From Wallemia ichthyophaga EXF-994 (Eukaryota; Fungi; Basidiomycota): a stretch of 32,000 nucleotides of DNA. How positions within the stretch are numbered: the first letter of the stretch is position 1; the number at the start of each line of letters is the position of its first letter. Made by a program: the position numbers and the translations under genes. Below, piece after piece: positions 1,550 through 31,753 of this stretch. The stretch spans positions 1 to 32,000 of the forward strand of contig NW_008806279.1 of assembly GCF_000400465.1 (NCBI RefSeq), read 5' to 3'. The notes under the pieces are model-generated. The model made no database searches, was not told where the DNA came from, and saw only the letters and a program-made list of their open reading frames with translations.

Positions 1550-4500
1550 AAGCAGTTGCTCGATAAGTCACTACTCTTACACAAGGACAAGCATGTAAAA
1601 GCACTCGTAGCGGCTTCTTTTGTGGATATACTGAGATTGTGTGCACCTGACGCACCATACACGCTTCAAGAGCTCAAGGTTGGGTGTTGATATCATATCA
1701 CCACAAACTCACAAATCAAATAGGACATCTTCTCATTTATATTCAGACAAGTAGCATACCTGTGGAAACCACCAAAGGATAAGAAGCAGAGCGAAGTCCA
1801 GTGCTATCAAGAGTAGGCGTATGTCTTCTTATACGGCACACTGCTAACAGCTTACAAGATATTACTACATACTTCGTACAATGGCGGACGTTAGTTGTAT
1901 AGTTCTCGTGTGTGACTTACCCAACTCAGAAGACGTCGTCGGTGATATCTTCAAGGACTTCTTAGAAGGAATACGCGTGGATACTTCACCGAGACTGCAG
2001 GGATTCATGGCCGACATCCTGGCTCAGCTTGTCGATGAATCCAACACTATCCCCAACGACATACTCGAGTCAATGCTCATTGCATTCTCAGACAAGACGG
2101 CCAAAATGAACTCAGCTAAGCATAGATTGGTTGTGGAAGTCTGCAACAAAACATCAGAGAGGTTGCAAAAGAGCGTCTGTCAATACTTCAGTGAGATTCT
2201 TCTAAAGTTGGTTAACGACGAGTATACGGAGAAGACTTTTGACGAGGTAGTGGCAGCGCACAAGATTATCAGAGCAATTCATAGACATTCACCACGAATC
2301 TTACTCAGCACAGTACCGCAGCTTGAGGCAGAGCTGTTGTCCGAGAACAACGATGTTCGTGACTTGGGCACGCGAACTCTAGGTAGAATGATAGGCGAGC
2401 CAACCGCCGACACCAGCTATTATTCACTCGCAAAAGAGTACCCAAATACCTTCCGTGCATGGATAGAAAGAAGGAAAGATTTAATACCGTCGATCAGAGG
2501 AATTATCGTGGAGTACGCCTCAGCAATAATACTCACCCATCCGCAACTCAGCAATGAGATACTCACAACTATCACTGACAAAATGCGCGACTTTGACGAT
2601 AAGGTTAGAGCTGGCGCTTGTCACTTCTTCCAAAAGATCACCTACGAAGTAGCAATCTCGTACACCTCCAAGAGCACCTTAGATGAGCTGGCGATGAGAT
2701 GCAAAGACAAAAAAGCACTCGTTCGTCAAGATGCATTTGAAAGTTTGGGCAGACTGTACGCTTTAGCATACGCCGATATCAAAATCAACAACACCGCGGC
2801 GATGGAAAAGTTTGGATGGATACCAAGAGCTGTACTCGCACCTCTGTCTGTTTCGCTTCCTTCGCAAATTGCCTCCATCAAGATTCAGGTGGAAAGGACA
2901 CTCGTTAAACACATTTTACCACTTCACGCTGATTCTGAGGGTGCATGGGTTGATCGTTTCTTGCGAGTATATAAGGATCTAGGTGAAGATGAGAAGAAAG
3001 GACTGCTGATGTTGACAGGACTGACTATGAGTGCTCAACGTCCATATGCTCTTCGGTTCGTGGAAGCTTGCGAGGAATTCAACAACGATCGCACCAATGA
3101 CAATAAAGAACACGTTTTGAACTACATCAAGTTCCTTGGCGGACTCTTTCCAGAAGACTCCAAAGCCACAGGTGATTTGCAAGAGTTCGTCAAGCTGAAC
3201 GAGAGCCGTCTTTACAAGAGTTTAAAGATAGCTATGGATACTCAACAATGCGATTTTAAGACACTGCAAAAGTCACAATCTGAACTCCATCGCCGTCTTG
3301 AGCAGGTAGCTGGTCAACGCAAAACGCTACCAGGCACATTCGACGCTCTTCTACTCAAGACCACATACCCGTTTATAAACAAGTCGTCTGTACCCCATCT
3401 TTTAAAGAGATCTGTCGAGGGAAGTAGCTCAGCAAAAGATATTCTTCTCGCTATCGCAAAGTTCACTCCTCTGATGTTGAAGAGTCATATAAGCGAGCTT
3501 AGCAGACACATTAACGACGAGAAATCAGCTGATCTAGCCCTCATTCTTCTGGCTGCAGTTGCAAGAGCTGACAGAAGTTCAATTCAATCTGATAAGCGTT
3601 TCATAGATCGTCTCATCCGATTCGTTGATGAAGGCACGCGCAAGCAAGTCAAGTATGCCACACGCATTCTGTCGTGTTATGAGAATGCCAAAGATAGTCT
3701 CAAAAAGATAGCTAGTAGTATCAAGTTAGAAGAAGATTTAAACAATGAAGATCGATTGATGAGGAGTTTTTCATTTTTGGCTGAGGCTTCTAAATCCGCT
3801 TATGATGTTATAAATGGGCACGCGGAGTCACTCTTTAGCACTATCGCTAGCCTTCTCATGACTCATCAGCACAGCTCTTTAGATGTAGGTGCGAGATTTA
3901 ATTTCAAAATTCTAATTGACATGTTGATAGCCTTCCATTGACACTGACTTGGAATGGGTTGAAGATGATGCAGTCGATAACCTTACTATGGCTAAATTAG
4001 ATGCCATGAGGCTTTGCACGCACATCGCAAAAGCCAATCAAAACAACCCTGATCAAGAGTTGGACACTGCAAAGGAGATTGGAAAGTTGTATGCCCGAGT
4101 CTTGCGTAACAAAGGTGAAGTGCTAGGTGAGGACGACGAGTCTGAGGATACAGCGTTTGCGGAAATCAACAACGAAGACGAAGTATTTACAACGCCGTGA
4201 GTTACATATTTTCACTCAAAATCAAGGCTAACAAAGGCTAGTGCCTGTATACGCTCAAGGCTCCGTTTGAGGGCGCTGATTGGATTGATTAAGATTGCAC
4301 ACGACGAGAAACTTGAGAAGGAAGTAGTCAGACCGAGATTTTTGTTAATGTCAGGTGGAATGCAAGATGCTGCTTATACTATTCGCAGGACGTTTATAGA
4401 AAAGCTGATCAAATACCTTGCCAACTTTAAGCTTCCACATCACTACAACGTCTGTATATTCCTCACTGCCCATGAGCCAGTTCCAGATATTGTCACCAGC

Positions 4501-5396
4501 GGTCAGATTTACGTTCAGTCCATGCTGCGTCGTCATACAGCGAGTGGGTGTCTTCCTTTTAAAGCTGCACTCCTAACCATCTCACCTAGAAATTCGCTTG
4601 AACGCTTTCGAAATGATCTTTTATCGTTTGTTACACACGCTCGCACATCATCCAGACTTCTCTGCTCACCCCGCTGATATTGAAGCGACAGCAAAGTAAG
4701 ACATAGACGGTCAAAGAACAATGCTAACATGCAGTGTAGGTATATAACGTTCTACCTTGAGCTGGTAGCCACTTCAGAAAACATCAATTTGTTGTACCAC
4801 TTGGCTGGAAGGCTGAAGACAGTAAGGGATATAACGACCAAAGAGAATAGTGTGAATCTGTACATCTTGAGCGAGTTGGGTCAGCATCTCACTAGCACAT
4901 TGGCACACAACAAGAAGTGGACTTTGACTGCATATGAAGGAAAAGTAAAGCTTTCAACTGATATATTCAAAGCACTACCAAATAGCGATGTACAGCGCGA
5001 GATTACTCAGAAGATGTACCTGACTGAAGAAATGAAGAGCCAGCTGGGTAACACTACCAAACATACAGCACCAAGGGTGGGTAAACTATGAGGCTGTTTG
5101 ACTATACTAACCACACCGCATAGAAAAAGAAAATTGAAGAAGGTGGTAATAAAACAAGGAAACCCGCAAAGCGCGCCAAGAAAAAGCATAATTGGGATGA
5201 AGATGATAAGGAGAGTGAAGGAGACATTTCCGGCGACGAAAGCGATGTTACGATGAACAAAGAAGATGAAGACAGAAGGAAAGGCCCAACGAGGAAAGCC
5301 CGTCCCCAACCACGACCTGCAAATCGCGTTCAGGACTCCGACGATGATGAGATGGAAGAAGCAGAACCAAACGACGAGAATGTTGACACTGAATGA
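1308..5396 (+). CDS. PDS5: Cohesin-associated HEAT-repeat protein Pds5, about 1225 aa, 10 exons (introns 1354-1398, 1434-1480, 1679-1723, 1813-1858, 3885-3930, 4197-4241, 4544-4589, 4696-4739, 5077-5123)
   Basis: Diagnostic DILRLCAPDAPYT, VPQLEAELL, RSRLRLRAL and RLLHTLAHHPDF motifs; acidic/basic C-terminal tail; the exon chain closes in frame. Confidence 0.95.
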
Positions 5397-9018: not shown

Positions 9019-9672
9019 ATGTCCGAATCTACCAATTTACCACCAAATGCACACAGATTACCACGCACAAACCAACTAGAAGGCTTAATGACAATCATAC
9101 GCGACAAGACGACATCAAGAGGAGAATTCATCTTCTATGCGGACAGGTTGATCAGACTTATAATTGAATCAGGACTTAACGTATTACCCACAATACCAAA
9201 GCATATTACTACAGAAACTGGCGAGAAATTTCAAGGTGTTGGATTTGAAGGTAAGGTGTGTGGTGTCTCTATTTTGAGAGCGGGTGAGGCAATGGAGAGT
9301 GCTTTAAGGGAGTGTTTGCGTAGTGTGCGTATTGGTAAAGTGTTAGTACAAAGAAATGAACAAACGGGTGAAGCACATCTCTACTATGCCAAGTTACCCG
9401 AAGATATTCACGAAAGATTCGTTCTCCTCTTAGATCCTATGTTAGCTACCGGTGGATCTGCGATTAGAGCTATTGAAGTCTTGCTAAGCAGAGGTGTACA
9501 GCAAGAGAAGATTGTCTTTTTGAATGTCCTCAGTGCACCTGAAGGTCTCAACGTTATGTATGAAAAATACCCAAAGATGAAGATTATTACTGGATGGGTG
9601 GACAGGCAACTCGATCAGCACAACTATATTGTTCCAGGATTAGGTGACTTTGGTGACAGATACTTTGCTTAG
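9019..9672 (+). CDS. FUR1: Uracil phosphoribosyltransferase, 217 aa, intronless
   Basis: FIFYADRLIRL, CGVSILRAGEAME, PRPP-binding VLLLDPMLATGGS and the C-terminal YIVPGLGDFGDRYF. Confidence 0.97.
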   Translation: MSESTNLPPNAHRLPRTNQLEGLMTIIRDKTTSRGEFIFYADRLIRLIIESGLNVLPTIPKHITTETGEKFQGVGFEGKVCGVSILRAGEAMESALRECLRSVRIGKVLVQRNEQTGEAHLYYAKLPEDIHERFVLLLDPMLATGGSAIRAIEVLLSRGVQQEKIVFLNVLSAPEGLNVMYEKYPKMKIITGWVDRQLDQHNYIVPGLGDFGDRYFA

Positions 9673-9896: not shown

Positions 9897-9968
9897 GGGG
9901 GTATAGTTCAGTGGCTAGAACGCGGTCTTCGCAAGACCGAGGCCGGGGTTCGATTCCCCGTACCTCCA
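9897..9968 (+). tRNA. tRNA-Ala, anticodon CGC, no intron
   Basis: Acceptor stem GGGGGTA/TACCTCC with the G3:U70 alanine identity pair and discriminator A; D arm TAGTTCAGTGG (A box); anticodon stem CGGTC-TT-CGC-AA-GACCG; T arm CGGGG-TTCGATT-CCCCG (B box). Confidence 0.96.
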
Positions 9969-10845: not shown

Positions 10846-13088
10846 TCATTTGTCATATCTGCAGAGTGTGCTTGGTTAGCTATCGCTTTTATTAGTCGTG
10901 CAATCCACACCACTCACATTGCTCGTGCCATCTTGGCTACGTCTACACTCTCCTTGATGTCATGCACGCGCACTATATCAGCGCCACCAGCCAACGCGGC
11001 CATTGTCGTGGCTGCTGTACCGGCCACGCGATCTTTGGCCGTATCGACGTTGGTGAGTTTACCGATGAATGCCTTGCGTGAGTGTCCTACAAGCAGCGGC
11101 ATGTGCGAGAGTTTAAGATTGGGTGAGGGGGTGAGTGTTGGTGTCATTGTGTCCAGAGAAGCATCACTCGATGTACATCTACCCCCGAATTGGGAGAGAT
11201 TGCGCAGGATATCCAAATTGCCGTTAACATCCTTGGCGAATCCAAGACCAGGATCTATGATAATATTCCAGCGTCGTATACCGCTCTCCATGGCTTTCTG
11301 CATCCGCTGCTGAATCTCCCCTTTGACGCCTTCGACTACGCCAGCGTCGTACTGCGTAAGGGATGTCATGGTGGAGGAGTCACCGCGCATGTGCATAAGT
11401 ATATATGGCACACCTAAATCAGCCACCGTCTCCAACATACCCTCGTCAGCCATCCCCCCACTGACGTCGTTGACTATATCTGCACCTGCTTCTACAGCTG
11501 CGCGTGCGACGCTGGCTCTGAAAGTGTCCACAGATATGAGAACATCGGGGTGTTGGCTACGCAGCGTCTTAATCAACGGTACTACCCGGTGTACCTCGTC
11601 GTGCGCAGATACATCTGGGGCATTAGGTCGCGTGGACATGCCGCCGACGTCGAGTATATCCGCACCTTCTTGCACCATTCTAGTTGCATTCGCGAGAGCG
11701 TCTTCAAGAGTAAAGTTGAGTCCGCCGTCTGAGAAGGAGTCTGGAGTGCAATTAAGGATGGCCATCACCCACCGCCTTCCGCGCAAGCTGAAGAGTCTGT
11801 CACCCACGGGCAGCACGAGTTGAACGGCGTTGTCGCCATCCCCAATACGCTGCAGGGCTTGCGTGGTAGTGAGGGAGTGTGTTATAGGTGTATAATTGGG
11901 GAGTATGTCAGCGAGAGGCCGTAGCACAAAGGCGCGCTCACGCATGCCCGCGTGAGGGACACGCAGAGTGTCCGTGTGCACGCACTCTTCGCCATACAGG
12001 AGGATATCGAGGTCGATGGGACGCGGACCCTTCACCTGCCCCTCCATGTCGCGGCCTAGATCTCTCTCAATCTCTTTGAGCGAGTCAAGGAGCGTGTGTG
12101 GGTGCAGCGCAGTGGTTATTTTGCACACACCGTTCAGAAATGCAGGCTGGTCGTGTACGTACATTGGCGCAGTAGCGTAGAGATGCGATGTGTCAACTAC
12201 ATTCCCCACTCCACGCTTCTCTAGTTGCGAGAGTGCGCTGTGGATGTGGGCCTTCTTATTGCCGAGGTTGCTGCCGAGAGAGAGAACAGCGGTGGTGGTG
12301 CGGGGGTGATCTTCTAAGACATTTGGAGAAACATTATAGTCAGCAGCTGTACGCGTCACTTGCACACTGGCAGAATCAGCGAAAGTGAGTGCACTCGGTT
12401 TTGCAGCTTTGATGGTGATGCTCGGGTGGGCGAGCTGGACAACAGCGAGTTTTGCAGCATCGAGAGCAAGATGTTCGAGTACGTGATAGGAGGAGTTTTG
12501 GAGGAACTGTTGGGGTGATAAAAAAAAGAGGTGAAAATTTGGATATTGACGTACATTGATGAGATTTTCAATGAGTAGTAGGATATGAGAATAGTCAGTA
12601 CCAGGAACACTAACATCTAAGACTACTTTCTGCTTAAACTGCCTCTCCCAGGGATGTATACCAATGATAGTGTCTACGTCAATACCAGAGACGTGGTAGG
12701 TATCATTAAACGCACAACCAGCGTCCTGTACCTGCTCATACTGTACGACACCTTTCAAAAGACCTTTGCACTTTGAAAGTTTAAGATTTAGGGCTTCCAC
12801 GCCTTGATAAGAGAAGGTGGCGCGTGAAATGGCAGTTGCGAGAGAATTGAGGTTGGAATAAGTGCCAGAACAGGCTTGGTTGATAGAATTCGTTAGGCTT
12901 GCGTAGTTTATGCTCTTATCGAGATCGTTTTGTACCGATGTACTGCACTGTATATCAACAACCAATGGCTCAGCGTTTGTATTCTTAAATCTATCGAATC
13001 CAACGGTACTAGTCACATTAAGCTTGTTTATACTAATGACATCCCTCATATGTTTCAACCTGTTTAATCCACTCAACCTACTTAACAT
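10846..13088 (-). CDS. FOL1: Trifunctional folate synthesis protein (DHNA-DHNA-HPPK-DHPS), about 711 aa; introns 12554-12507 and 10917-10859
   Basis: Two FolB-like domains (SINYASL; IIGIHPWER..KPSAL), HPPK (LSLGSNLG, GPRPIDLDILLY, ERAFVLRPL) and DHPS (MAILNCTPDSFSDGG, STRP, DPGLGFAK, SRKAF, RVHD). The last intron (GTGAGT..GCTAAC..CAG) extends the C-terminus to ARAIYDK*. Confidence 0.96.
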
Positions 13089-13201
13089 TCACTTGAAACC
13101 CTTTTGATAACGCCGCCAAAGCCAGAAAATTAGGTGAAAATTTTATATAGACGAATATAGACGACAAATGTACAAAATTAAGCAATCAAGTACAAAACAC
13201 C

Positions 13202-13948
13202 TTAGTTCATCTTACGGATGAGATCGTTGACAAACTTCTCTCTGTTACCAACATCACCACCTTCAACAAAGTGAAGGAGCTTACGTGGTCTGTAACCGCC
13301 GTTTGCAGAGCTGAGGTGGAATGGCCACAAGAAGTTGGTGACTTGCTTGAAGTGTGGGCCAGCGGTGGCAACCTCGTGGATGCAATCTTCAATTGAGAGT
13401 ATGTCGTATTGACCGAGTTCCTTCTCAATGATGCTGTTGTCTTGGAGAGGGATACGTTGCTTGTTCACCTTACCATATCCACGCTTGTAGATCAATTCAC
13501 GGATGGACTTCAAGTTTGGTTCACCGTATGCGACATATGGCTCAACCATCTTAAGCATCTGCTCGGTGGCTCTGTTTACCTTGATAAAGACACCGGAGTT
13601 GATCTTAAGGAGACGCAAGAGCTGCATAACCTTACGTGGCTTTGGTGCAATGTTTGAAACACCACGCAGACGAATCGCAAAGTAAACCTTTGGCTGTGGT
13701 TGGACGTAGAAGTCGCCGTTGGCACGAGCAACACGCTTCAAGCGGACTTCCTCAGCTTCTCTGATTCTGTACTCCTTGACGTACTGCTCTGCACGCTTGA
13801 AGATGACCTTGCGCTTTGCTTGTTGCGCCTTCTTTGCATCAGCAGCCTTGGCCAGCTTCTCCTCCCTAGCCTTGTTGTCCTGCTTACGCTTCTTCAAGAT
13901 AGTCTCTGGCTGCTCGATTTTCTGAAGAGTAGGGACGGTAGTGGACAT
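13202..13948 (-). CDS. RPL7: 60S ribosomal protein L7 (uL30), 248 aa, CDS intronless
   Basis: [59 protein letters not shown]. Confidence 0.98.
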
Positions 13949-14060
13949 CTATTCAGATATTTTAGTTTATTTCTCTCTTTATTCCCCAGCCACCCACCTC
14001 TAAGCGTTCGCGTTGGCGGTAGTCACAAGCAGAGAGAAGATTTCACTCCGCCTTACTCAC
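13949..14060 (-). other. Putative 112-nt 5'UTR intron of RPL7 ending immediately before the ATG, with a nested alternative donor at 13997 (49-nt intron)
   Basis: On the minus strand: GTGAGT donor at 14060, internal GTGGGT at 13997, branch-like ACTAAA 13966-13961, and TAG acceptor abutting the ATG. A pyrimidine-rich likely start region (about 14100-14086) and an AT-rich TATA-like element (about 14147-14135) lie upstream. Confidence 0.6.
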
Positions 14061-14308
14061 ATTCGAATTTTAAAAATTTAAATTTGAGAGATGAGTTGAG
14101 AAAAGGGGCGTATGGAGTCGCAGTGTGTTGTATGTATTTATTTTTATCGTGTAAGCTGCGTTTGAAATATTTCACCTGCACTGGTTGAGATGGTCGTGAG
14201 AGATAGTGAGAGATGATGGCTTGTGGAGGTGCCAGCTGTGCTCTACACGTGTGCATCTCTAAATCCCATCGATTCTCATTTCCCGTCCCTCCTTTTCCAC
14301 CTACGTCC

Positions 14309-17064
14309 ATGGACTCGAATAGAATCCAAGTACGGCCATCTGTTCAGAACGTCTCTCTGCGCAATAGAACCGTGTCTGCTAATAGCCCAGGCGATAAGCC
14401 ATTCAACCCTGCCAGAAGGGCGTTTAGGCCGCGTCGATCTGAGCCATTGAGAAGCAGCCGCGATAAGGAGAACACGCCGACGAAACAGGCCAACACCCCA
14501 ACGAAGCAAGCATATACCCCAACAAAACAGGCAACTACGCCTAATAAACCAATAAGACAGCTCCCAGTGACGCCGACGCCGGTTGCAGCATCAACAGTCC
14601 CTCCATCCGCGCCTTCTCAAACTCCCCATCAGACACCCACTCAGACGCCAAAGAAGACTACAGATGATAGCAGTACAACGCCAGTCTACTCTCCAGTCGC
14701 AGCCTCTGAGAGGACTACACGCTCACCAGTACAGCAATCACCCAGCCATCAACCCAGCCATCAACCCAGCAGTCAGGATGAATTGATGACAGAACACACG
14801 CTAGCACCTTTCAGCGTCGCTGATTCTGGCTGGGAATTGGAAACTGCTTCAAACGACTGCAACGCTTTAGACGAGGATTTCCAGAACACTGTCAACTTGT
14901 TATCTACCCAGCACTCCTCTACTATCCTCAGCTACAAAAGACTCCTTGAATCGTGTCAAAACAGCTCAGCTGCCCAGCTCTACGCACTCCAGGCTGAGGT
15001 TAATGAACTCCACAAGACCACTCACGCGCTGCGAGTAGAGAATAGAAATATGAAACTTGATCGCGATAACATCCCGCAATCCACACCACCCACTCACCTC
15101 TCCACTCTTCTCTATCCCCATTTCGACGAAATAGCCGTTCAGAAGGCGCTGAGGCAGCTCAACCAGGGCGAGAGATTGCGACTGATGAGAGTGATACTAG
15201 AGAACACACTCCCTCACGACATTACGACCACCATAGCCATGCTCGAGAAGTATGCTGCCAGTGCTTTCGATTTGCTAGCCACACTTCCGACGGGTATATC
15301 CGTGCGTATTCTCTCTCATCTCAGCGTGAGCGAAGCATTGGGATGTCGGTTAGTATCCAAACGCTGGAGCGACATGGTGAGCAAGCCAGCGCTATGGCGC
15401 GCGTTCTCGCTCCGCCTCACAGCCTCAGATCCCGATCCGCTCTCTCCGCCAGACAGGGAAGACGACTGGCAGCCACTGTACCGAGCACTGCACTTCCGCG
15501 AGCAAAATTGGCGGCGAGGAGCAGCGCAATCGATCAAGTTATTGCGCGGCCACACGGGGTACGTGACGTCGATGCAGCTGAAGCAGGGTGTGCTAGTTAC
15601 TGGGTCGTACGACCAGACGCTGCGTATCTGGGACGTTGGAAGTGGAGAGTGTCGCACGGTTCTTCAAGCGAAAGCTATCAGCTGTCTCGACTACCTCCCC
15701 AAACACAAGGTGCTAGCAGCAGGGTATTTCGACGTCGGTCGTGTAGTCGTCTACTCCACCCTCACCAATCAGCAGCTGCAGATGCTGCAGGGGCACAACA
15801 AGGGCATACGCGCGGTGGCATGCAATGACGAGTACCTCGTCTCCGCCGGCCAGGACAAGGCACTGGTAGTGTGGAATTGGCGAACGGGGCAGCGCATAGC
15901 CCGTTTCGGTCAGCAGACCAATGTGTCTATTGGAGTGCAGCTTATTGACTCAGATAAATTCATCGCCGTTACCGTCGATTCGATTGTGCGCTGCTTCAGC
16001 ATTACTAAGCGCGAGATGACGTCGCAGTACAGACTCTCCTCGCTCCTTCCTGAGCTAAGCAGCATCGGGAACAGCGACACTAGCTTGACGTGGTTCGGCG
16101 CGGACGGACTGAGCATGACGTGTGCAACTAAGAACCACCTCATTCATCTCGAGTGGGAAGAGGGCGAGGAGGAGGTGATACTTGGGGAGCCGATCCAGAC
16201 GCAGGTGCAGCACGTTCAGCAGACGCAGGCACAGACGCAGATACAAACGCAATCGCAACAGTCGCAGTTAGCCCCACACACACATACATCTGGCACACTC
16301 AAACCGCGTAGCTCGACTGTATCTATCGGTGCTTCCAACACTCCGAACGCCACAAACGGCAGAGGCCCACGCCGGTCGTTGGGCATAGGTGGTGCTCATG
16401 CTCAGTCACCCCTGCTCCCGCGCAAGAACAGCGCAGACGAGTCCATATCCGATGCCAACAGCGTGCCTTCGAACCCCTCTCATCCCAGTCTGGGATCCAC
16501 TGCAGCAAATTCATACTCCTACTCAAATTTTCCCTCCCACTCCTCACCAACCTCCCCCACACCCCAAATCAGACGCAGGAAAGCACCCATACTGACAAAC
16601 CCTCCTCGTGTAGTACAAATCACGCACACACAGAATATGGCACCCGTAGGAGCGACCGATGTGTCCAAACACCGTGTCGTCACTTCTACACGCTTCTCTT
16701 CCCGTTCGGGTGCAGATAGGAGGGTAAGAGATGGTTTTCATTGTTTGTACAATTTACTCACACACTTACTCAGCTTTTCTGCTCTACTCTCGGTGATACT
16801 GTTCCTATCGAGGGCGTCTGGAAGGACTTGTCGCCGCGTTGTGAAGATGTCGGTGTGGAGATGGCTAAAGATAGCCTTGCGAATAGTAACAGAGGCCCGC
16901 TGTCTATTTGTATAGACCACCAGCAGGCTGTTTTTGGTTGCGCTGATGGAACGTGAGTTATACGTGGCTGTGTATTTCCACACTAATTAGACGAAAACAG
17001 TGTTTATAGTTTGTCATTCGTTGGCGAGAATTATACAAGTCATACTTCTAGCCCACCATCCTAA
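14309..17064 (+). CDS. F-box/WD40 repeat protein (SCF substrate adaptor), about 885 aa; introns 16724-16773, 16953-17000
   Basis: F-box DLLATLPTGISVRILSHL..VSKRW..LW; WD40 repeats GHTGYVTSMQ..GSYDQTLRIWD and GHNKGIRAV..AGQDKALVVWN. The last exons give GCADGTVYSLSF. In-frame ATGs at 14213 and 14216 are alternative starts. Confidence 0.88.
14474..14548 (+). repeat. 21-bp degenerate tandem repeat encoding TPTKQAN-TPTKQAY-TPTKQAT-TPNK
   Basis: 3.5 copies read directly, with synonymous divergence between the copies. Confidence 0.85.
14741..14770 (+). repeat. 12-bp tandem repeat CCCAGCCATCAA x2.5 (PSHQ)
   Basis: Exact adjacent copies in the N-terminal disordered region of the F-box protein. Confidence 0.8.
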
Positions 17065-17184: not shown

Positions 17185-20057
17185 CTATACCAACAAAACA
17201 TCCAGATTCATATCCCTCATCACGTCCATCCACGATAATTGATTGCACCCCATATCAGATCTCCTCCAATACTCCTTGAGTATCGCTTCCGCAGACTCTA
17301 CATCCCAGCACGCTTGTGTTTTGAATGACTGTAGCAGCGCCAACACCGATGACCTCTTTTCCTCAGAGATGGAGTGCATCCCCGCAATCAGCACCGGCCA
17401 CGTCAGCCATACTACCATGCCTGTACTCGATCCTTCGAAGCAGACTTCGAGTATACTGTCAGTAGCCCTCACAACCCTCTCATCCGCAATAGAAACCTCA
17501 AACAGATTGCGCAAGATGTGTATCTGCATCGCATATCTATGAGCGTGATTCCCAACACTAACTCTGGGATGCAACTGTACGAAATTCATCTGATTGGAGA
17601 AGTTTTCAAGCTCTGTCAGTGTTTCTCGTGACTCCTCTTCTAATGCTTGTCTCCGCATTTCCTTAACCACTTCATTCGAATCCACGTGACGTCTCGCGGA
17701 GCGTGAGCGATTTCGCGAATTCGCTGAACGACTCTTGCGAGCTTCGCGGGTTCGAGAGCGTGAATCGCTGCCTGAGTTGCGGACTTTGCGAGAGCTGCGC
17801 AATTCTGAACGACCACGCATTTCAGGTGTTGAATCTCCACTGTTACAGCTGCTTCTTTCAGCTTTTTGCGCATCATTCTCGTACAGCGGTAAACCGAGTT
17901 TACGTTTCCTGGCGACGAGTGAGGAAATGCGAGCTATTAGATCAACCATTCCTCTACTCAATCCGAACATACGCTCAACGCTTTCCCACTCCCAATCGCA
18001 GCTGCCTGATATTTGTTAGAATGAGATTAGCTATGTAACCATACTACCAACCTGTCTCGCCAAGCTCAAGGAACCACGGCGACCAACCTTTGATGATGGC
18101 TGGCTCTTCACCTGTCGTGAGCGAGCCAAAAGCATCCCTCGTTGCAAGCTGCTCGAGGAGAAATCTCGGCACAGACACTTCCTTTTTCTTTGCCGGTTTG
18201 CCCGTTTCCAGCATCTTGATAGGACCACCGCGTCGTTGTATTACAGATTTTGCAAGTTCTAAAATACCTAAAAGTAATGTTAATTTGTAATGCACCAGTG
18301 GATTAATCCAATCAAACCCACCTTTCCAGCCTGGATCTCCAGCAAGAATGTCGCGCATAGCAACGCTCAACACCCCAGCCAAGAATGTATCCGTTTCAAC
18401 TTCGCCTGCACTCACTGCTTTTTGAAGATATCTGACTGCCGTTCTACGCAAACTTGCAGCCAGATCTCTGCTCGCTGGATCCTTGCCGCGCAAATATGCA
18501 AGATGTACTGCCGACACACTAAGCAAACCTGTGCGCAAAGCTTCAACGCTAATACCCTGTCCTGTAACTTGAGCCTGGGCATATGCATCATTAGGGTTCT
18601 TGTCTGCAATCATACCGAATGCGAGTGGTGCATGTATACGTATCCATGGATTGACAGAGTGTGGCAAGTTCAAAGCAATGATGAATCTCACCGACTGTGT
18701 GAGATAATGATGTACCAGCATACGATCTTGTTGATTAGGGAAGAATGGGAATAAGTAGTCTGGGTTTGAGAGCAGTGGTGAGCGTGTTTCAACTGATGAT
18801 CCTCCGACTGCGGCACTATTCTCAATCACCGATTTGGTGAGTTTATTTTGGAGTGTTTCCTCGTCCTCACCCTCATCCTCATCCTCATCCAAATGGAAAG
18901 CGGTTGTGCTAGGAGGGTTTGCAAGCTCATCCTCTTTCAATTTGCTGAGATCAGGTGGATTTGAAGACGTTGGAAATTTAGTTTCAAATGGAATCGCGAA
19001 TGGTGAAGGTGGGTAGAGAGCGTCAAACGGCGAAGGAGTCGATGCTTTTGTGATTGATTGCTCTCTAGCGGTATCATCATTTTTTTCTTTCCCCGCTTCG
19101 CCTTTTTTCTGTCTCTTGTGAGCCGGAGTGTTTGATTTCTGTGACAACATCTCAAAATCCCTCGTAAAGCTAGCCATATTTTGGGACAGACTAGCGTCAG
19201 GCTGTGGAGGTGGAAATACATTGCTGATCGCTGGTCCGATTTGTCCGTCGACATCTAGGAAAGTGGGTGCGGGGAACCGCGGACCAATCTGAGACACAGA
19301 GTCATCATCCGGAGCCTCATCAGGGAGGAATGGAGCCAGAAAATCGGGTGGATCTGTGGTATACTTGAGCCAGCCAGGTCGAGAATCGTTACCATCTTCT
19401 TCGTCAACGCTACTCGTGCGGCGTTTGCTGCTATCATTTCCATACTCAATCGAAGGTGGAAATGAGCACTCGCGCTTTGCAACCTGGCAACGATGGCATA
19501 CTGGTCTACCTTCATCACACTATCTATAGTGTTATCTGGTGTATTAAGCCGTACCAGGAAATTACCCACCTTTATCTTCCTCGATCTGCACGTGTAGCAG
19601 CCTTTCCTGCTTCTCCTAAACTTCTTTTTGTCTGCAGCTTCCTGTTCCCTGTATTGTGCATCGTCTCTTGAGATGGCGGAAGCAGAACCAAATCCCGAGG
19701 ACGTCATCGTTGGCGAGCTGTTGGAGTAACTCGTTTGGGGGGTCAATTGGGCGGCGAATGGCGGCTGTGAATCTTGAATGCCCATAATGTATTCGTTGAA
19801 TGGTTGCACCGGTTGTACTGGTTGCACTGGCTGTACCGTTGTCGCCGCCGGTGCAGCTGCAGGAGCAACTGGCTGCTGAGAAGACCTCCTACGCAATTCA
19901 TCAATATCTAAACACCCACAACTATTCCAACTCACCCTCTCAACTGCAAATACTCTTGAAACGCAGAAATATCATCCACATCCCAATTCCTATCGAGGAG
20001 CCCGGCGACAGACGCAGCACCAGCGAGCTCCGTAGGCAGGTTGTACTCATTGTTCAT
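17185..20057 (-). CDS. Zn(II)2Cys6 transcription factor with a Fungal_trans_2-like C-terminal domain, about 891 aa; introns 19935-19889, 19569-19520, 18321-18268, 18051-18006
   Basis: Splicing gives SRKGCYTCRSRKIK-CDEGRPVCHRCQVAKREC (six Cys). Downstream LVHHYL..NPWIR..LLSVSAVHL and the C-terminal WPVLIAG are typical of this family. The exon chain closes in frame. Confidence 0.9.
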
Positions 20058-20141: not shown

Positions 20142-23100
20142 TTAAACACTCTCGGAATTTATTTGCTTGAGTAGATCGATATACTCTTGCCCAAGCTTCG
20201 ATAGCGCTTTCCCCTTTGCTAATATACTTGCGAATTCCTTTACAAGGTCCCGCTTCTTGTAGCCGAGTACCGTCGGAATAAAGTCTTCTCCTCGGCTGTA
20301 GTGGTAGGTGAGTACTTATTACTTTATCCGATCTTTCTACTCACTTGAATATTGGACCCATGTACTCTTTTATTATTTCTTCCGCTTTTCCTCTGAATCC
20401 ATCCTCAGACAGCCTGCGGGCATATCCTAGCATGGAGTTCCTGAATTCTCCCGGTGACTCGAGCAATATAGCCGCATGTAGGCGTGTTTCAAAGTGACTG
20501 TACGTAATAACACTCTCTTCCTCCTCCCTTTCTTCATTATTGAGGTTCATTTCTTGATTAAGTTTTTCATCGACCACCATCTCATTGAGTATGATTTCAA
20601 TCTGTGTGATTGGGTTTGTTTGTAGTTGTTGGTAGTGATGTTGCGATTGAGTGCTCTGTGCAGATGAAGATGAATGTCGATGTCTGCCTCGTTTATCCCA
20701 TGCATCCGATTTAGCGTATTTGATTGTACTAACGAGTATCCATGTTTTGAGATTCTTGTAGTCGTAAGCATGTGCTGTGCCGTTGGATAACACCAGTACT
20801 GGTACACCATTAGAACGTAGCTGTACAGTCTTGATTGCCTCATCTGCACCGAGAAGGGGTGCTATACTTGTGTTATCTATTAAACTTTTTCGCTGCCTCG
20901 TGCAATACTCATACATATTCGCTGAACATGTTATTGCAAACAGCTTGCTACCTTCTGCTTCTAAAATTGAGCAGGGCGCATCAAGTGTAATATCAGGTAG
21001 TAACTTGCGTCCTGAGAAAGTGTACACTCTTAAAGTTCCATTTTCCATGCTCACACCCACAAAACCATCCCCGACAGCAACATTAACCACCCTGCAAGGT
21101 ACGTAGTCGACCCACAAAACCTTACCACTATCCTTAGTATGACTATCGCTGCGCTTGCTTAACATGAAAATCTCGGTACGATTTTGTTCGCGTCGTCTTT
21201 CTTTTTCTGTATCATTACCTTCTTCAACCATATCCATGTCAACTTGACCGCCTGCATTCCTCACTTCCACCCTGTCCAACTCTTTATTCCCGACAGTAGC
21301 AGCGCCCATGAACTGATGGAAAAGGCTCGATTTGATAGTCGGCGCGGCAATAGTTACGTCTTTCGTAGTATGCTCTATAACCCCTATATCCCTAGATTCG
21401 CCAATTGATTTCCTCTTTACACCATGTCCCAATGTACGAGCTTTAACGTTTTTGTAAATTAGCGCAGCTGGAATGTTTGATATCTTTACGCGACTTGGAT
21501 CTGTCTCTTGTATTTCCATGGGAGTGTCGTTGTCATTCTCACCATCCTCATCACCCCCACTACTTTCTTCTTTCGGGTCATTTACATACGGTAGCCAGTA
21601 CCCAACAACATTTGGATTCTGAGGATGTGGTAGTGTCATCGGCATGAGTAGGTCTGAAGGTAAATGTGGAGGGTTGAAAGTTTGGGCTGGTATGCTGTTG
21701 GGGTAGTATGATGGTTGGGTTGGGTATGCAGATGTATTTGAAGTGGGTGGGTTAAATGGGTTCGTATGGCTTGGTGCAGATGCAGTTGCAGATGTGGATG
21801 CTTGGAATGGTGAGACTCCTGGCAAAGATTCAACAAGCGTGGGTGCTATTCTCTTTTTATTCGACATCTCCACAGCTGTTGGGGCTGGTCTCTTGTTATC
21901 CATCAGTTTCTCCAAATGAGATGGTTCTTTTTGGAGAACAGGACGTGGCTGCGCGACTGGCACAATTGGGTGTACTGGCGGTACTGGCTTCTCGTACATG
22001 GAGAGAATATTGTTAACTTCCTGTGTAGCTGCCGCCTGACCTAGTTCAGCTTCAGTGAAGGAGAGTGCCACAATACTACCGTCTGCTGAACAACAGTAAA
22101 GTGTAAGGCCATCTCTAGACCAACTAAGATCGAGAACTTGGCGATTGAATAGATCTTTGATAACAACGAGTGGTTTCGAGGTGTTGATTTTCCACACCGA
22201 CACCACCGAATCAGTAGAACCTGTTGCACAAATGTTGAAAAAGGAGCCCTGACTGTCTTTGTACATGCGTGGGTTGTATGCGGTGCACAAAACGCTGTTT
22301 TCGTGACCAACGAGTTTCATTTGAGATGACCAGTCTTCGCGTTCTACCACGGCAGCAACAAAGACGCTATCCACGATGGCATTAGCGCAAATAATACTGG
22401 CACCGTCAGGAGACCACCTTTGAGAGGAGGGTAAGAAATATGATAATAGGCGTTAAGAAAGTAAATACTCACGATAAACGCCTGACAAAAGCTCTTGGAG
22501 ATTCAATGAAAGGTTCAGTAATGCAAGCTTGCAAACCCCAATCAGCAGTTCTCCAAATCTTTAGACTGCGATCATCAGATGCAGTTGCAAGGTAGTGACC
22601 AGCAGGATCGAAACTAACGCCTTTGATAGAGCTATCATGGCCAGATATTTTGATAATTCGGTCGAAAGTGCGGGTATCATGAACCATGAAGCAACCATCC
22701 ATGGCCACACTGGCGAGATAGATGTCGTCCTTTGACCACGCGATTTCAGTTACATCTATGTGCGTTTTTGTGGGAAAGGAATGACGAAGAAAGGAAGAAA
22801 CGCACCACTATCATGACCGCTGAGTACTCTCTCAGCTCTCCAGCCCTCAATATTAACTTCAGTACTGCCAAAGACCTTTCCACCGCCATTTGGATCGATT
22901 GCCCAGATAATGATAGCGCGGTCATCGGAAGCAGAAGCGAGATACCTGCCAGAGTTACTCCATCTAATAGAAAGTACGGGGCCTGTTGATTGAGCTGTTT
23001 AGGTGGTTTATATGACTGTGCACTCAAAACACACCTGAATGCTGATCCAGTGTTGATAGCTGCTTCGGTACTCTATCACTACAGGCCAATTTCTCATTCC

Positions 23101-27172: not shown

Positions 27173-28641
27173 TTAGTACCTCGACTGCCTCTTAGCGTTA
27201 CGATGGAACCTCGCAAGTCTCTGCTGTTCATTCTTCAGTGCTCTCTCGCGTTTCTCGCGATCCATCGCAGAGACAGTTGGGTTCTTCTGACGTTCTTCGC
27301 TCTCCTTCTCTTCCGCCATTTCACCCACATTCTCCGCTTTCTCATACAGACCTTTATCGCTTCTCTCAGCCTCGTGTGTTTGACGAATAAGTCTTTCTCT
27401 GTTGAGTTTCTCTTGTGCGCGCGCTGCCTCCTGCATCGGCTTCTTCTTCTCTTCAAATTCCTCCCTGAAAGTGTTGTATGACGATTTGACACTTTCCAAG
27501 AAACCTGGCTGCTTCTGATTGCTGTCAGCGTACTGTTGTGGGAAGTTACGCTTGTTGTTCTCTGCAATCACATCCAATGATGGCAGCCCCATGCTGTTTC
27601 TCACCCTGGTTGAGCTGAGGAGGTAGGATTGGGCGAGTGAGAATGAGTTAGTGGTGCACCAGTAGATGAATACCGCCTATTTCGTTTGTTAGCAACGTCG
27701 TCTAATTGAATTACACTCACACTTGGCATCTGCAGCCACCACGCCATAGGAACGATAATAAACGAACCAATCTGGAAGAAAGGTTTCATTTTCTGTGCTT
27801 GCGGGGACTGCACACTACCGCTCCCATCAGGACCCATACTGATACTCTTGAACATGAGAGAAGATGAGATAATAGGCAGTATGCACGTATAATCGGGGAT
27901 AGTGAGATTCTGCACCCAACCGAAACCACCTTCTGCGAGCTGCTTGACTGGTAATCTAGCCATATCGTCTAGACCAAAGTAAAAAGCGATGAAGAGGGGC
28001 ATCTGAATAAGTGGTAAGACTAATCCACGCAGAGGTTTAAGGTTCTTCTCTTTCATGAACATCCTCATCTCCTGTCCGAGTACAGCCGCGTCTTGGTCTT
28101 TACCAGCCTTCTTTGCGGCAGTCATTGAGTTGATCTTGGATTGCATTTCTGGCTGGTGGACTGCCATGCGAGATGTGTGTATGAGGCTGTTGCGCAAGAG
28201 TGGGAACAGCGCCATTCTGAGTGATACTGTCGTCACTGCGATCGTCGCCCACCAAGGCAAACCAGTGGAAACGTGAACAGCTTCCAACGCTTGCTGGACA
28301 AAGCCATACCACTTGTTGCATAGCCCGAGTTCTGCGAGATCGCCATATTTGAGTGGCTCAGTAGTGCTCTCAACGATGTTTTGCAGATGTGCGGGTGCTT
28401 CTGGTGATGGTGCTCCTGCTGGTGGTGATGGTGCCGCTGCTACTGCTTCTGGTGACGCCGTCGATGCTGCTGGCGGATCGTTGAGTACATTCACTGGCGC
28501 TGAAGATGGCTCTGGCTTATTGCTCTCCGTAATAAACGTCCTGTACTGGCTGAGATGGATCTGCTTCTGCAGTTGCACATATCTCGACCCCCCGTTGATT
28601 CGCCCAAATCGACTAGCACCGTACACTCCCCTTGCGATCAT
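27173..28641 (-). CDS. OXA1: Mitochondrial inner-membrane insertase Oxa1 (YidC family), 474 aa; intron 27720-27677
   Basis: HVSTGLPWWATI..LRMALFPL, PLIQMPLFIAFYFGL, WVQNLTIPD. Splicing gives PSAVFIYWCTTNSFSLAQ and joins ORF 27173-27604 as a long charged C-terminal tail, which indicates Oxa1 rather than Cox18. The first ATG is at 28641 (the ORF track starts at TTG). Confidence 0.92.
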
Positions 28642-28816
28642 CAACGTTTGGAACAAGAATCAAGAATATTTATTTGCACTCAATGCGACTCGAACGCTCC
28701 TCCCGAATCTGCATTTAAATTTTTCACTCGCCTCGTCCACTTCCCGTTGAGCCATCGAGCGACAAGGCTTTTCTGTCCACCTAAAAAATCACCCAACCCA
28801 TCTTTGACACTGAACA

Positions 28817-31753
28817 ATGCCGCAACAGCCATGTAGAGATTGTGGCAGTACAGAAATAGACTACGACAGCTCATCTGGATGCTCATTCTGTGCTAAATGT
28901 GGTATTGTTTTCGAGGAGTCAAATATCGTATCCGAGATTGGATTTGGGGAGTCGTCATCTGGACAAGCTCATGTACAGGGTACGCTTGTATCGCATGATG
29001 CCGGTGAGTTTGTTTACATCCCCTACCGCCTTTCTCAATCCTCCACCAGCCGGCACTTCCCGCCAATCGAGAGACAAGACCATATCAGAAGGTTCGTGGT
29101 GTTTTTATAGTTACCAGCAATCCTCACACTCAAAATCACACTTAAATTCCAGGCAAACGTCGCGTTAAGCAGCTCGCAGCCGCTCTCAGAATCTCAGAAG
29201 CAGTTTCAGACTCAGGTGAAAGATTCTACGCACTAGCCGTACAAAATGAGTTTATACGTGGACGTAAATCTGTCTACGTTGTCGCAGCTTGCTTATACGC
29301 CGCCTGTCGTACACTACGCGACTCACACATGCTAATTGATTTCAGTGATCTGATGCAGGTGTGTTTATCGGGGTGTTTGTTATTGACAGAAATCTAACCA
29401 CCCCTTGTAGATCAACGTCTTCGCTTTGGGCACCACCTACCTCCGTCTCGTCGAGAGATTGGATCTCAAACTGCCGAAAATGGACCCTTCCATCTACATA
29501 CAAAGATTCGCATCTCTCCTCGAATTCGGTCAGGAAACTCAGAGAGTCGCCAGTGACGCTACTCGCTTGTGTAAACGCTTCGATGAGGATTTCATCACTC
29601 ATGGTCGTCGTCCTGCTGGCATTTGCGGCGCTGCTCTCATACTCGCTGCTAGGATGAACAACTTCAGAAGATCAGTCGAGGAAATTGTGCAAGTCGTCAA
29701 AATCGCTGATGTCACCGTTCAGAAACGTCTCGATGAATTTGGAAAAAGCGCTGCAGGTGATTTGACAGTCGAGAATTTCCGCGATGACGAACGGGCTAAA
29801 AATTGGAAAGAACCACCGAGACCTCCCACATACCATAATGCAAGAAAGAAGGAAATGATGGCAAAGGAAATTGAAACAGATCCTCAAGGTGAACTCGCCA
29901 AGAAGCAAGATAGATCCAAAAAGTTGAATAGAGTGTTTGATAAAACTACTCGACCAAGGAGAAAGAACGATGACCCTGATCAGAAGCAATTTGATGACTA
30001 TTACAAGACTATCGTTGGTGTCTCTGCTGATTTTTTCCAAGAGGAGGACGGTAAAGATGCAACCAAGAAAATCACCGCTAAAGGATTGAACAAAAAGATG
30101 AAAAAGGCATACGAAGAGAAAGCTAGAAGGAACCGTGCCATAGACAGTGATGACAATTATGATCAGCTTGAGAGTGAAGATGATGAGGTTGGCAATAGTG
30201 GTAAAGATGGTGAGACACCGCTATTTGAGGATTCAGATGAGGATATTCCAAGGCGACTCCGTCGCTCACGACCTACACGTGCCAATCGCTCTGAGTCAGC
30301 AGAAGAAGATCAGGATGGTCGTCATTCTATTGACCAGGGTACCTCCAATCAACCTGCAAAATTGAGGGACGCCATGGGTCCCGGAAATGAAAGCACTAAT
30401 GAAGAGATGCAATCCAACACTGTACAAGGAAAAGACTTCCAACCTCCACACAGAGATAAATCTGCCACTCCAGGAGACGCATCACATCCTCCAAATAAGT
30501 CTTTCAATCACACAAGTAACGTCATCGAAACTCTCGAAGAGAATGGTCCGCAAAGTGAAGACGAGGTGCATGCAAATGACGAAGAGAAGGGGAGTGAGAG
30601 GGAGAATGAAGAAAAGATTGTTCAAGAGGATGAAAAGGAAAACGAAGATGAAGATGTTCGTATGCAAGTTGAAGAGGGAGGTGACAAGCAGACTGGGAAT
30701 ATTGGAGACTCTCAGCAGATACAACTCGAGCAAGAGCCAGGACAATTGCCTAGTCATTCTTCTCCACAGGAAAGATCTGACAATGTGCCTGTTTCACCTT
30801 CTCAAACAAGACATTCTCATGAGCCAAATCAATCGCCTCAGCCAGTCAAAGAGGCACATCAATCAAACGAATCTGCCACTCACGAAACACAGGATGCATC
30901 TCAATATCGTGCTTCTACAGAATTAGACACTCAAGAGCCTCGGGAGGTACCTCAACCTCGTGCTGTGGAAGAACCAACCACTCAACAGCCACCGGAAGAA
31001 GCAGCAAAAAACATGGACGACAAGGAAGATGAGAAGGAGGATGAAAAAGAGGACGAGAAAGAAGATGAGAAAGAAGACGAAAAGGAGGATGAGAAGGAAG
31101 ACGAGAAGGAAGACGAAGAGGAAGTAATAGTTGATGAAACAGACGAACCAACTCAAGTCGATCAAGATAAAAAACAAAGTGGACCAGAAGAGAAAGAAAT
31201 TACAGAAGAGATATCACATGCACTCGGTGATCCAAACATCCAATCACTCACTAATAGACTTGACAACGTTGATGACAGACGTCGAGCAGAATTGGAAAGA
31301 CGCAATGCGAATGTAGATGAGCTACAAGGTCTAGATGAGGAGGAGCTCGATGATATGATTCTTGGTGACAGTGAAGTTAAAGTGAAAGAGAGAATATGGA
31401 TGGAGTTCAACAAAGACTATCTCGAAAAGATTGCCATTCGTCAAGCTACAGGTCAAGATACGCAGAAGAAGCCACGTCGCAAAAAGCGTAAGGCTAAAGA
31501 ACAGTCAGTAAAGCCTGAGAATCTGACAGAGGCAGCGTCGCAAGTTCTCAAACAGCGTAAGGTATCAAAGAAAATCAATTATGGTGCGCTTGAAGGACTG
31601 TTTCACAAAGACAACAGAGAAGTCAACAGCTTGGCACCGGGTGAAGTAGATGAAAAAGAAGATGAGAAAGAAGACGAAGAGGAAGAAGGGGATGCTGAAG
31701 AGCACCCTGCGCCTGAGTATGGTGAAGAATTTTCAGATAACGACATGGACTGA
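28817..31753 (+). CDS. BRF1: TFIIIB subunit Brf1, about 925 aa; introns 29004-29049, 29092-29152, 29359-29410
   Basis: Zn ribbon CRDC..CAKC; cyclin folds GRKSVYVVAACLY, INVFALGTTY, DPSIYIQRFASLLEFG, GRRPAGICGAAL; TBP-binding block LDEEELDDMIL..KERIWMEFNKDYL; SKKINY. Confidence 0.96.
31022..31117 (+). repeat. 12-bp coding repeat, (KEDE)x8, in Brf1
   Basis: Eight units of AAR GAR GAY GAR; all differences between units are synonymous. Confidence 0.92.

Follow-up and report, generated by a model that had tools for sequence, protein, structure and literature searches.

A candidate short leader intron of conserved position, and species-specific sequence upstream of it, at the RPL7 gene of Wallemia ichthyophaga

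The RPL7 gene and its leader

The stretch of DNA analysed here, referred to as the window, comprises the first 32,000 nucleotides (nt) of contig NW_008806279.1 of the salt-loving basidiomycete Wallemia ichthyophaga EXF-994 and carries on its minus strand the gene for the 60S ribosomal protein L7 (RPL7/uL30), whose 5' leader is the subject of this work. The coding sequence (CDS, 13202-13948) is a single unbroken open reading frame (ORF) of 248 codons plus stop, identified by its translation, its Pfam domains and protein identity. The exact protein of ORF 13948-13202 was matched by protein look-up on scaffold KE007229.1 of the same strain (GCA_000400465.1), where the called gene carries the Pfam domains Ribosomal_L30_N and Ribosomal_L30, and the protein is 68-72% identical to 60S L7 of many basidiomycetes. 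This bears out the assignment to RPL7 in a preliminary description of the stretch, which had gone on to propose an autoregulatory splicing switch in the leader.

Immediately upstream of the ORF the minus strand reads ...TTTAAATTTTTAAAATTCGAATGTGAGTAAGGCGGAGTGAAATCTTCTCTCTGCTTGTGACTACCGCCAACGCGAACGCTTAGAGGTGGGTGGCTGGGGAATAAAGAGAGAAATAAACTAAAATATCTGAATAG|ATG, with a TAG that ends at 13949 and the RPL7 ATG at 13948, so that the predicted 3' splice site adjoins the start codon. Two nested donors precede this acceptor. The proximal one, GTGGGT (13997-13992), begins a candidate 49-nt intron of the form GTGGGT...CTAAA...TAG (13949-13997), and the distal one, the consensus donor GTGAGT (14060-14055), begins a predicted intron of 112 nt with the same acceptor and is overlapped by an upstream ATG-TGA (14062-14057). 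Common to both possible introns is a candidate branch site, CTAAA (13961-13965, within ACTAAA), whose branch A would be 13962, 13 nt from the 3' splice site. The segment between the donors is TGAAATC...GAG (13998-14045), here called the leader block; a transcription start near 14044 would make it exon 1, and use of the distal donor would turn it into the 5' half of the intron. The preliminary description was exact in each minus-strand coordinate that it stated, for the two donors, the ATG-TGA, the 112- and 49-nt spans, TAG|ATG and the two stems treated below.

An intron of 112 nt would indeed be about twice the local norm, as had been remarked: the likely introns in the window measure 44-58 nt, those in the CDS of RPL7 orthologues 47-67 nt, and the published genome-wide mean for W. 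ichthyophaga is 61 nt (PMC3849046). The proximal intron agrees with the local norm in its GT...AG ends, its branch-like motif and its 49 nt, and GTGGGT is also the start of two other likely introns in the window (at 5077 and 25998). The best branch candidate of the leader is CTAAA, as against the CTAAC, CTAAT or CTGAC that stands 8-15 nt from the 3' splice site in the local introns, a set that consists of likely, not verified, introns.

Transcript-type contigs of Wallemia RPL7 were not found, exact-protein look-ups with the W. ichthyophaga and W. mellicola proteins having returned genomic-type contigs only. A Wallemia RPL7 exon 1 was matched 0 times when the metagenome collection was scanned twice for exact patterns, spliced RPL7 proteins of other Wallemia lineages were absent from the protein collection searched, and the supplements of the genome paper (PMC3849046) hold expression tables without junction or start-site data. 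One 940-nt contig (L004) begins inside the leader intron; a DNA and an RNA origin are indistinguishable for it.

Conservation of the leader and its donors in Wallemia

The same locus with the same neighbours was recovered from relatives by protein-cluster look-ups, namely from the close relative W. hederae, from W. mellicola (ten strains and several metagenomes), from a close sister lineage of W. mellicola (L018-L020, represented below by L018) and from a divergent lineage of low guanine-cytosine (GC) content (L006-L013 and L021-L029). A MAFFT alignment of all eight leaders was unreliable in the spacer upstream of the leader block, and anchored pairwise alignments were used instead. A leader intron of 45-59 nt lies in each of these four lineages, with its acceptor 0-3 nt before the ATG throughout: W. 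ichthyophaga reads TAG|ATG, W. hederae CAG|AATG, W. mellicola and L018 TAG|AATG, and the low-GC lineage probably TAG|GAAATG. The arrangement of acceptor and start codon that had been described for W. ichthyophaga thus appears to be kept across the genus. The donors stand at the same aligned place, GAG|GTGGGT (49 nt) in W. ichthyophaga, AAG|GTGAGG (45 nt) in W. hederae and AAG|GTAAAA (49 nt) in W. mellicola and L018, and the probable orthologous donor of the low-GC lineage (L007) is CTA|GTAAAT, giving a 59-nt intron. This shared position identifies the proximal GTGGGT as the ancestral and positionally conserved donor. It is closer to the donor consensus than the orthologous GTGAGG and GTAAAA.

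The distal donor is not conserved in position, whereas the proximal donor is, in four further Wallemia lineages. The AATGTGAGTAAGG of W. ichthyophaga corresponds to AATGATTGAAGG in W. hederae, with GATTGA in place of GTGAGT; the distal GTGAGT is likewise absent from W. mellicola and L018, and nothing comparable is found in W. mellicola. The upstream ATG is kept in W. hederae without the TGA, while W. mellicola and L018 have GTG at this place and a different ATG 17 nt downstream. Within W. ichthyophaga both the distal GTGAGT and the ATG-TGA are fixed in 12 of the 12 assemblies examined. By this comparison both are specific to W. ichthyophaga, and the claim that they are parts of a switch finds no counterpart in W. 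hederae or in the other three lineages.

In minimal start-stop upstream open reading frames (uORFs), of which Arabidopsis NIP5;1 has an example, a stop codon comes directly after the AUG. The AUG-UGA of W. ichthyophaga resembles them in lying upstream of the main ORF, being known here as genomic sequence, and differs from a conserved element of this kind in that W. hederae lacks the TGA and the ATG of W. mellicola is not orthologous. A conserved uORF peptide was considered as well; it was rejected since the frames opened by the upstream ATGs in W. hederae and W. mellicola agree neither with one another nor with the main frame.

The leader block has a history of its own. Among W. ichthyophaga, W. 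hederae and W. mellicola, identity at four-fold degenerate CDS sites amounts to only 56-62%, and unconstrained sequence should therefore be nearly unalignable between these three species. In the leader block, W. hederae, W. mellicola and L018 share 88-90% of positions with one another and 63-66% with W. ichthyophaga; intron identity between the species is 50-60%, and the CDS distances are equal. With the relatives considered by themselves, W. hederae and W. mellicola/L018 agree at 88-90% of the leader TGAAATCCTTCTC...CTTGCTTGTGAGCTGCCAACCGCTGGAAG, at about 60% of four-fold sites and at about 50% of the adjoining intron. We take the leader of the relatives (L005 2903-2954, L014 2533-2583, L018 2533-2583; orthologous to minus-strand positions 14045-13998 of the window) to be a strongly constrained element, at the DNA or the RNA level, which by the same alignments has decayed in W. 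ichthyophaga. Loss of constraint in the very lineage that has a new upstream consensus donor is what intronisation of the leader predicts. In this respect the preliminary description gains a point, since a leader that lacks the relatives' constraint between the two donors would fit intronic status in W. ichthyophaga.

An alternative that makes use of this observation is that the distal donor works. Transcription would then start near 14100, the gain of GTGAGT would have intronised the leader and removed the upstream AUG, and a 68-nt hairpin, described below, would compact the intron and mask the ancestral donor, by now cryptic; splicing would be constitutive and without feedback. We consider this explanation possible though doubtful. 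It accounts for a consensus GTGAGT that is fixed in 12 strains and for a constraint on the leader that is lost only in W. ichthyophaga, and it has to contend with a proximal GTGGGT that is intact and near consensus despite its decayed surroundings. That this donor is closer to consensus than the donor of any relative suggests its continued use.

Polymorphism is of little help here, as variation within the species is too low for a test of constraint: the 112 nt contain two single-nucleotide polymorphisms (SNPs) among the 12 strains, 14054 A/G and 13991 G/T, each at position +7 of one donor.

Introns in the RPL7 CDS vary over the same set of lineages. The CDS of W. ichthyophaga (13202-13948, minus strand) is intronless; W. 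hederae, W. mellicola and L018 retain an intron of 47-52 nt after codon 39, and two introns interrupt the CDS of the low-GC lineage (L005 3118-3164; L014 2748-2799; L007 2727-2777 and about 2871-2937). The leader intron would therefore be the sole remaining intron of the gene in W. ichthyophaga.

Predicted structures of the leader RNA

Two stems had been proposed to form in the 112 nt in a mutually exclusive manner. Stem A joins TTCTCTCT (14038-14031) with AGAGAGAA (13978-13971), either as a perfect helix of 8 base pairs (bp) or as 10 bp with C14039 bulged; dinucleotide shuffling of the 112 nt yields a perfect 8-bp stem in 1.9% of cases. The isolated 112-nt RNA has a minimum free energy (MFE) of -22.8 kcal/mol, which is unremarkable against dinucleotide shuffles (z = +0.09), and neither stem is part of the MFE structure. 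Here AGGCGGAG is paired locally with CUCUGCUU and competes with stem A for the pyrimidine tract, and the ensemble fraction of stem A is 0.21-0.28; the fraction becomes about 0.99 if the first 16 nt are left out or if GGCGGAGUG is paired to codons 3-6 of the CDS.

Stem A is the outer helix of an extended hairpin of 68 nt (13971-14038, minus strand). Its inner helices join CTACCGCC..CGC (14022-14010) with GTGGGTGG.TGG (13997-13986), in RNA letters CUACCGCC..CGC with GUGGGUGG.UGG, and bury the proximal donor, all six nucleotides of which are predicted to be paired. The MFE of the hairpin is -22.2 kcal/mol in a 72-nt RNA and -23.3 kcal/mol (z = -1.98) in the 99-nt leader, and its stability places it in the top 3.2% of same-length windows in the 32 kb, or in the top 3.7% of GC-matched ones: the hairpin is unusual, not rare. 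The SNP 13991 G/T lowers its stability to -19.5 kcal/mol. The duplex between leader and intron beats 99.4% of shuffles in W. ichthyophaga only (p = 0.006; 0.15-0.72 elsewhere), and the fold z-scores of the other Wallemia leaders range from -1.2 to +0.9. In W. mellicola the analogue of stem A would be UCCUUCUCU with AGAGAGGA; its sister lineage L018 has two substitutions in the purine tract, for which re-pairing in a shifted register is predicted, without a gain in stability.

A hairpin over the proximal donor could have a function of its own. If transcription started near 14044 and the proximal donor were the sole one, this species-specific structure would lie close to the cap, sequester the 5' splice site and act as a brake on splicing, perhaps one that a protein opens or stabilises. 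Structures in the 5' splice site region that are bound by protein have reportedly been found in the RPL30 and RPS14B pre-messenger RNAs of Saccharomyces cerevisiae. The six paired donor nucleotides of the predicted fold, its z of -1.98 and the duplex p of 0.006 would all agree with such a brake; since these statistics are modest, a SNP that is common reduces the stability, four related lineages lack the hairpin and no protein-binding motif was identified in it, we regard it as very improbable. The same hairpin bears on the use of the distal donor, because the complementarity of leader and intron that is significant only in W. ichthyophaga spans the proximal donor, and structure around cryptic splice sites is enriched in yeast introns (PMC12350175). 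As a mask for a cryptic donor it is weakened by being only in the top 3-4% of windows and by a segregating SNP that destabilises it.

Stem B, in contrast to stem A, is negligible in the energy model. It was to join GGCGGAGT (14052-14045) with ACTACCGCC (14023-14015) on the minus strand with one bulged A. Its ensemble fraction is 1e-4 and its pairing probability 0.00 in every context tried, and the best fold that contains it has -19.3 kcal/mol against the MFE of -22.8, i.e. it is 3.5 kcal/mol worse. Stem B thus fails as the exclusive competitor of stem A, and a switch between the two is not predicted by the energy model. Some competition with stem A does exist, but it comes from the local AGGCGGAG/CUCUGCUU hairpin and not from the proposed stem B. 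The alternative pairing of CCGCC with GGTGG across the second donor, also put forward, is possible in the sequence.

Two observations concern the arms of stem B. In a 172-nt fold, GGCGGAGUG (14044-14052) pairs with CACUACCGUCC in codons 3-6 of the CDS (13933-13943, minus strand), and this pairing forms instead of stem B. The codon 3-6 segment CACUACCGUCC is a near-repeat of the 3' arm of stem B, GACUACCGCC (14024-14015).

The preliminary description had suggested a search for covariation in related leaders. Carried out on Wallemia leaders, it revealed neither covariation nor conserved structure: RNAalifold gave a consensus structure of -3.67 kcal/mol with 0 compensated pairs among five leaders, and a covariance model of the hairpin found nothing in the relatives with default filters and, with filters off, a match of 10.6 bits (expectation value E = 2.8) to the W. 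mellicola leader that stood among random matches of equal score. No match of the leader to an Rfam family was obtained at E up to 10, and no snoRNA-like match was present in it. A role as host of a snoRNA, as known for intron 2 of yeast RPL7, was rejected for lack of such a match.

Comparison with the autoregulated RPL7B intron of yeast

The zipper stem is said to have been first proposed for RPL7A by Howe and Ares. For RPL7B of S. cerevisiae the precedent invoked in the preliminary description is confirmed by the work of Granas, Hewa, White and Stormo (NAR 2025, PMC12311795), in which competing structures of intron 1, one of them bound by Rpl7, mediate autoregulation. This intron, with 409 nt and the branch sequence UGCUAAC, is located within the coding region; a zipper or enhancer pairs positions 49-76 with 331-356 through arms of about 26-28 nt, and a 155-nt three-stem "Hooks structure", for which conservation in 36 fungal species is reported, is bound by Rpl7 in competition with the zipper (PMC12311795). 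The RPL7B type of intron is further marked by dependence of splicing on the enhancer, owing to a suboptimal branch sequence, and by repression of splicing under excess Rpl7. The Wallemia leader shares with RPL7B the uL30/L7 family, an intron at the 5' end of the gene, a candidate branch site that seems to depart from consensus and a stem which would move the 5' splice site nearer to the branch. It differs from RPL7B as follows: the candidate intron has at most 112 nt and lies in the 5' untranslated region (UTR), the stem has 8-10 bp, the competitor is thermodynamically negligible and the structures are absent even from W. hederae. Exclusive structures of comparable stability, on which the RPL7B mechanism is based, are not found here (stem A 0.21, stem B 1e-4), nor was a counterpart of the 155-nt Rpl7-binding structure detected in the 112 nt of the Wallemia leader by Rfam, consensus folding or the covariance model.

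Stem A can also be compared with zipper stems in general. Criteria modelled on the S. cerevisiae A complex call for linkers of at least 10 nt on the side of the 5' splice site and at least 20 nt on that of the branch point, with a sum of 42-85 nt (Rangan et al., NSMB 2025, PMC12350175). With 8 bp and, reckoned from the distal donor, a 5' arm starting at position 23 of the intron, stem A has the length and the donor distance of a zipper. Its 3' arm, however, ends at 13971, 8 nt from the branch A at 13962, and the total linker of 22 + 8 = 30 nt is below the range. Stem A is therefore zipper-like in topology only. Zipper stems moreover belong to introns of 200-500 nt, and a 112-nt intron among introns of 45-60 nt would have little need for one. 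What had been claimed for stem A accordingly divides in two. Its formation is predicted, and it extends into a hairpin that would bury the proximal donor; it is not found in the relatives, shows no covariation and lacks the geometry of a zipper.

The switch as proposed would require that both donors are used, that the donor taken, or splicing versus retention, is decided by mutually exclusive structures, that free Rpl7 shifts this choice and that the start-stop uORF lowers translation. Its parts are present, namely the nested donors, stem A and the AUG-UGA, the AGGCGGAG/CUCUGCUU hairpin does compete with stem A (about 0.2-0.3 as against 0.99 without the first 16 nt), and regulation of this type is established for RPL7B in S. 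cerevisiae (PMC12311795). With a stem B fraction of 1e-4, no element kept in W. hederae or beyond, no covariation, no counterpart of the 155-nt Hooks structure in a candidate intron that measures 112 nt as a whole, and a geometry foreign to zipper stems, we consider this very improbable as well. A comparable or convergent switch had been suggested for Wallemia; there is no conserved structure, no stem B competitor and nothing like the 155-nt element on which it could be based. Neither folding nor comparison supports the regulatory reading of the preliminary description, and nothing in this analysis points to feedback by Rpl7.

Transcription start and promoter elements

Whether the distal donor matters depends on where transcription begins. 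A conserved A/T box, TTTAAATTTTTAAAA (14068-14082, minus strand), followed by TTCG (14067-14064), is a candidate TATA-like core-promoter element. It is conserved in four lineages and recognisable in the fifth, and it lies at a constant 19-22 nt upstream of TGAAATC(C). The spacer between the A/T box and TGAAATCC, which is the conserved start of the leader and is preceded by a varying base (G, C or A), keeps its length (19-22 nt) and shows a sequence identity of 63-70%. A spacer of constant length and poorly kept sequence, followed by a conserved leader, is the pattern that a TATA box, separated by such a spacer from the start site, should produce. We infer that the A/T box may act as a TATA-like element with a start near 14044, in which case the distal donor and the AUG-UGA would be promoter DNA and the start upstream of 14062 that the preliminary description presupposes would be contradicted; from the start position follows, with the same reservation, that the distal donor would not be used. 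Furthermore, the upstream ATGs of W. hederae and W. mellicola, if transcribed, would open uORFs of 40 and 34 codons that overlap the main AUG out of frame, and long overlapping uORFs in a ribosomal protein messenger RNA (mRNA) are implausible.

The elements farther upstream allow another start. An A-rich element, GATAAAAATAAATACATAC (14130-14148, minus strand), is an alternative TATA-like candidate with a start near 14100, and A-rich counterparts occur 47-58 nt upstream of the A/T box in W. mellicola (GATAAATAAAATAAATAAC) and in W. hederae (ACAAAAATACA). From a start near 14100, GTGAGT would be the first donor transcribed, and the A-rich element together with the G-poor tract that follows it could make up the promoter and short first exon that use of the distal donor calls for. 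The spacing between A/T box and leader favours a start near 14044 instead, an upstream start would burden the RPL7 mRNAs of the relatives with the long overlapping uORFs just described, and, as a point against use of the distal donor, the stem A linkers of 22 + 8 nt fall below the steric minimum of 42 nt modelled for yeast zippers.

In W. ichthyophaga a CACGTG motif lies at 14246-14251 (minus strand), about 165 nt upstream of the A/T box; in the low-GC lineage a CACGTG (L007, about 2567-2572) stands directly upstream of the A/T box. CACGTG is a Cbf1-type site, familiar in the ribosomal protein promoters of many fungi.

Interpretation

We favour, at about even confidence, the reading that RPL7 of W. 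ichthyophaga has an ordinary conserved 49-nt leader intron and species-specific sequence upstream of it, and no conserved Rpl7-responsive switch. The gene would contain a short spliceosomal intron in its 5' leader, at a position conserved in the genus and with its acceptor adjoining the start codon, and the ancestral donor GTGGGT would yield an intron of normal local size. GTGAGT and ATG-TGA would be species-specific letters in the fast-evolving spacer between the A/T box and TGAAATCC, and with the A/T box as a TATA-like element and a start near 14044 neither the distal donor nor the upstream ATG would ever be transcribed. Stems A and B would reflect lineage-specific complementarity of low-complexity pyrimidine and purine tracts and of G/C-rich repeats. 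The candidate intron is like other 5'-UTR introns of fungal ribosomal protein genes in being a short GT...AG intron of modal length, with CTAAA 13 nt from the acceptor, conserved in position and adjoining the ATG; it departs from them through the base-pairing predicted for its donor in W. ichthyophaga, and is otherwise unremarkable.

Several points weigh against this reading. The transcription start on which it turns is placed by sequence comparison, and the A-rich element at 14148-14130, followed by a C/T-rich, G-poor tract, makes a start near 14100 possible. A perfect GTGAGT would arise by chance in the 22-nt spacer with a probability of <1%. The decay of the leader to intron-like identity in W. 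ichthyophaga only is left unexplained, and a hairpin over the proximal donor is awkward if this donor is the sole one and sensible if it is now cryptic. That the distal donor is used, be it as sole or as alternative donor, we therefore rate somewhat short of an even chance. One elaboration combines such use with regulation: the new consensus donor would have intronised the leader, the hairpin would mask the old donor, and the choice of donor would set whether the uORF and the structured leader are retained, providing a species-specific control of RPL7 that might respond to Rpl7 or to growth or salt. We regard this as improbable.

The readings differ in what they would mean. An ordinary leader intron would add one more 5'-UTR intron to those of ribosomal protein genes and be of value for annotation only, since current gene models lack it. 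Were the distal donor used, the locus would be a dated case in which gain of an upstream donor has converted a conserved exon into intron while RNA structure masks the old site, and feedback by Rpl7 would extend the splicing autoregulation of ribosomal proteins from budding yeasts to an early-branching basidiomycete.

Neighbouring genes and annotation

RPL7 is flanked by FOL1 downstream and by a divergently transcribed F-box/WD40 gene upstream. The longest ORF of the latter, on the plus strand, starts at 14213 and the NCBI model at 14309, and the intergenic promoter region shared with RPL7 therefore measures 264 or 360 bp. Many NCBI annotations of W. ichthyophaga and W. mellicola strains merge RPL7 with FOL1 into single models of 863-884 amino acids (10914-13948, minus strand, in the window; loci L039 and L040). 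These fused models look like an annotation artefact; they also place RPL7 and FOL1 proteins in a single 90% cluster, and the initial homology search missed the Wallemia orthologues as a result.

A second ribosomal protein gene for comparison of promoters was not found in the window. Further genes recognised by Pfam in it are those for the cohesin factor PDS5 (1881-3941), a fungal-specific transcription factor (17185-19297), HIRA (20341-22374), an Oxa1/60KD_IMP insertase (27601-28656) and the TFIIIB subunit BRF1 (29426-31753). The transcription factor is encoded by two ORFs separated by a likely intron near 18002-18044, and a tRNA-Ala(CGC) gene (9897-9968, plus strand) lies just 3' of a uracil phosphoribosyltransferase ORF (9019-9672).

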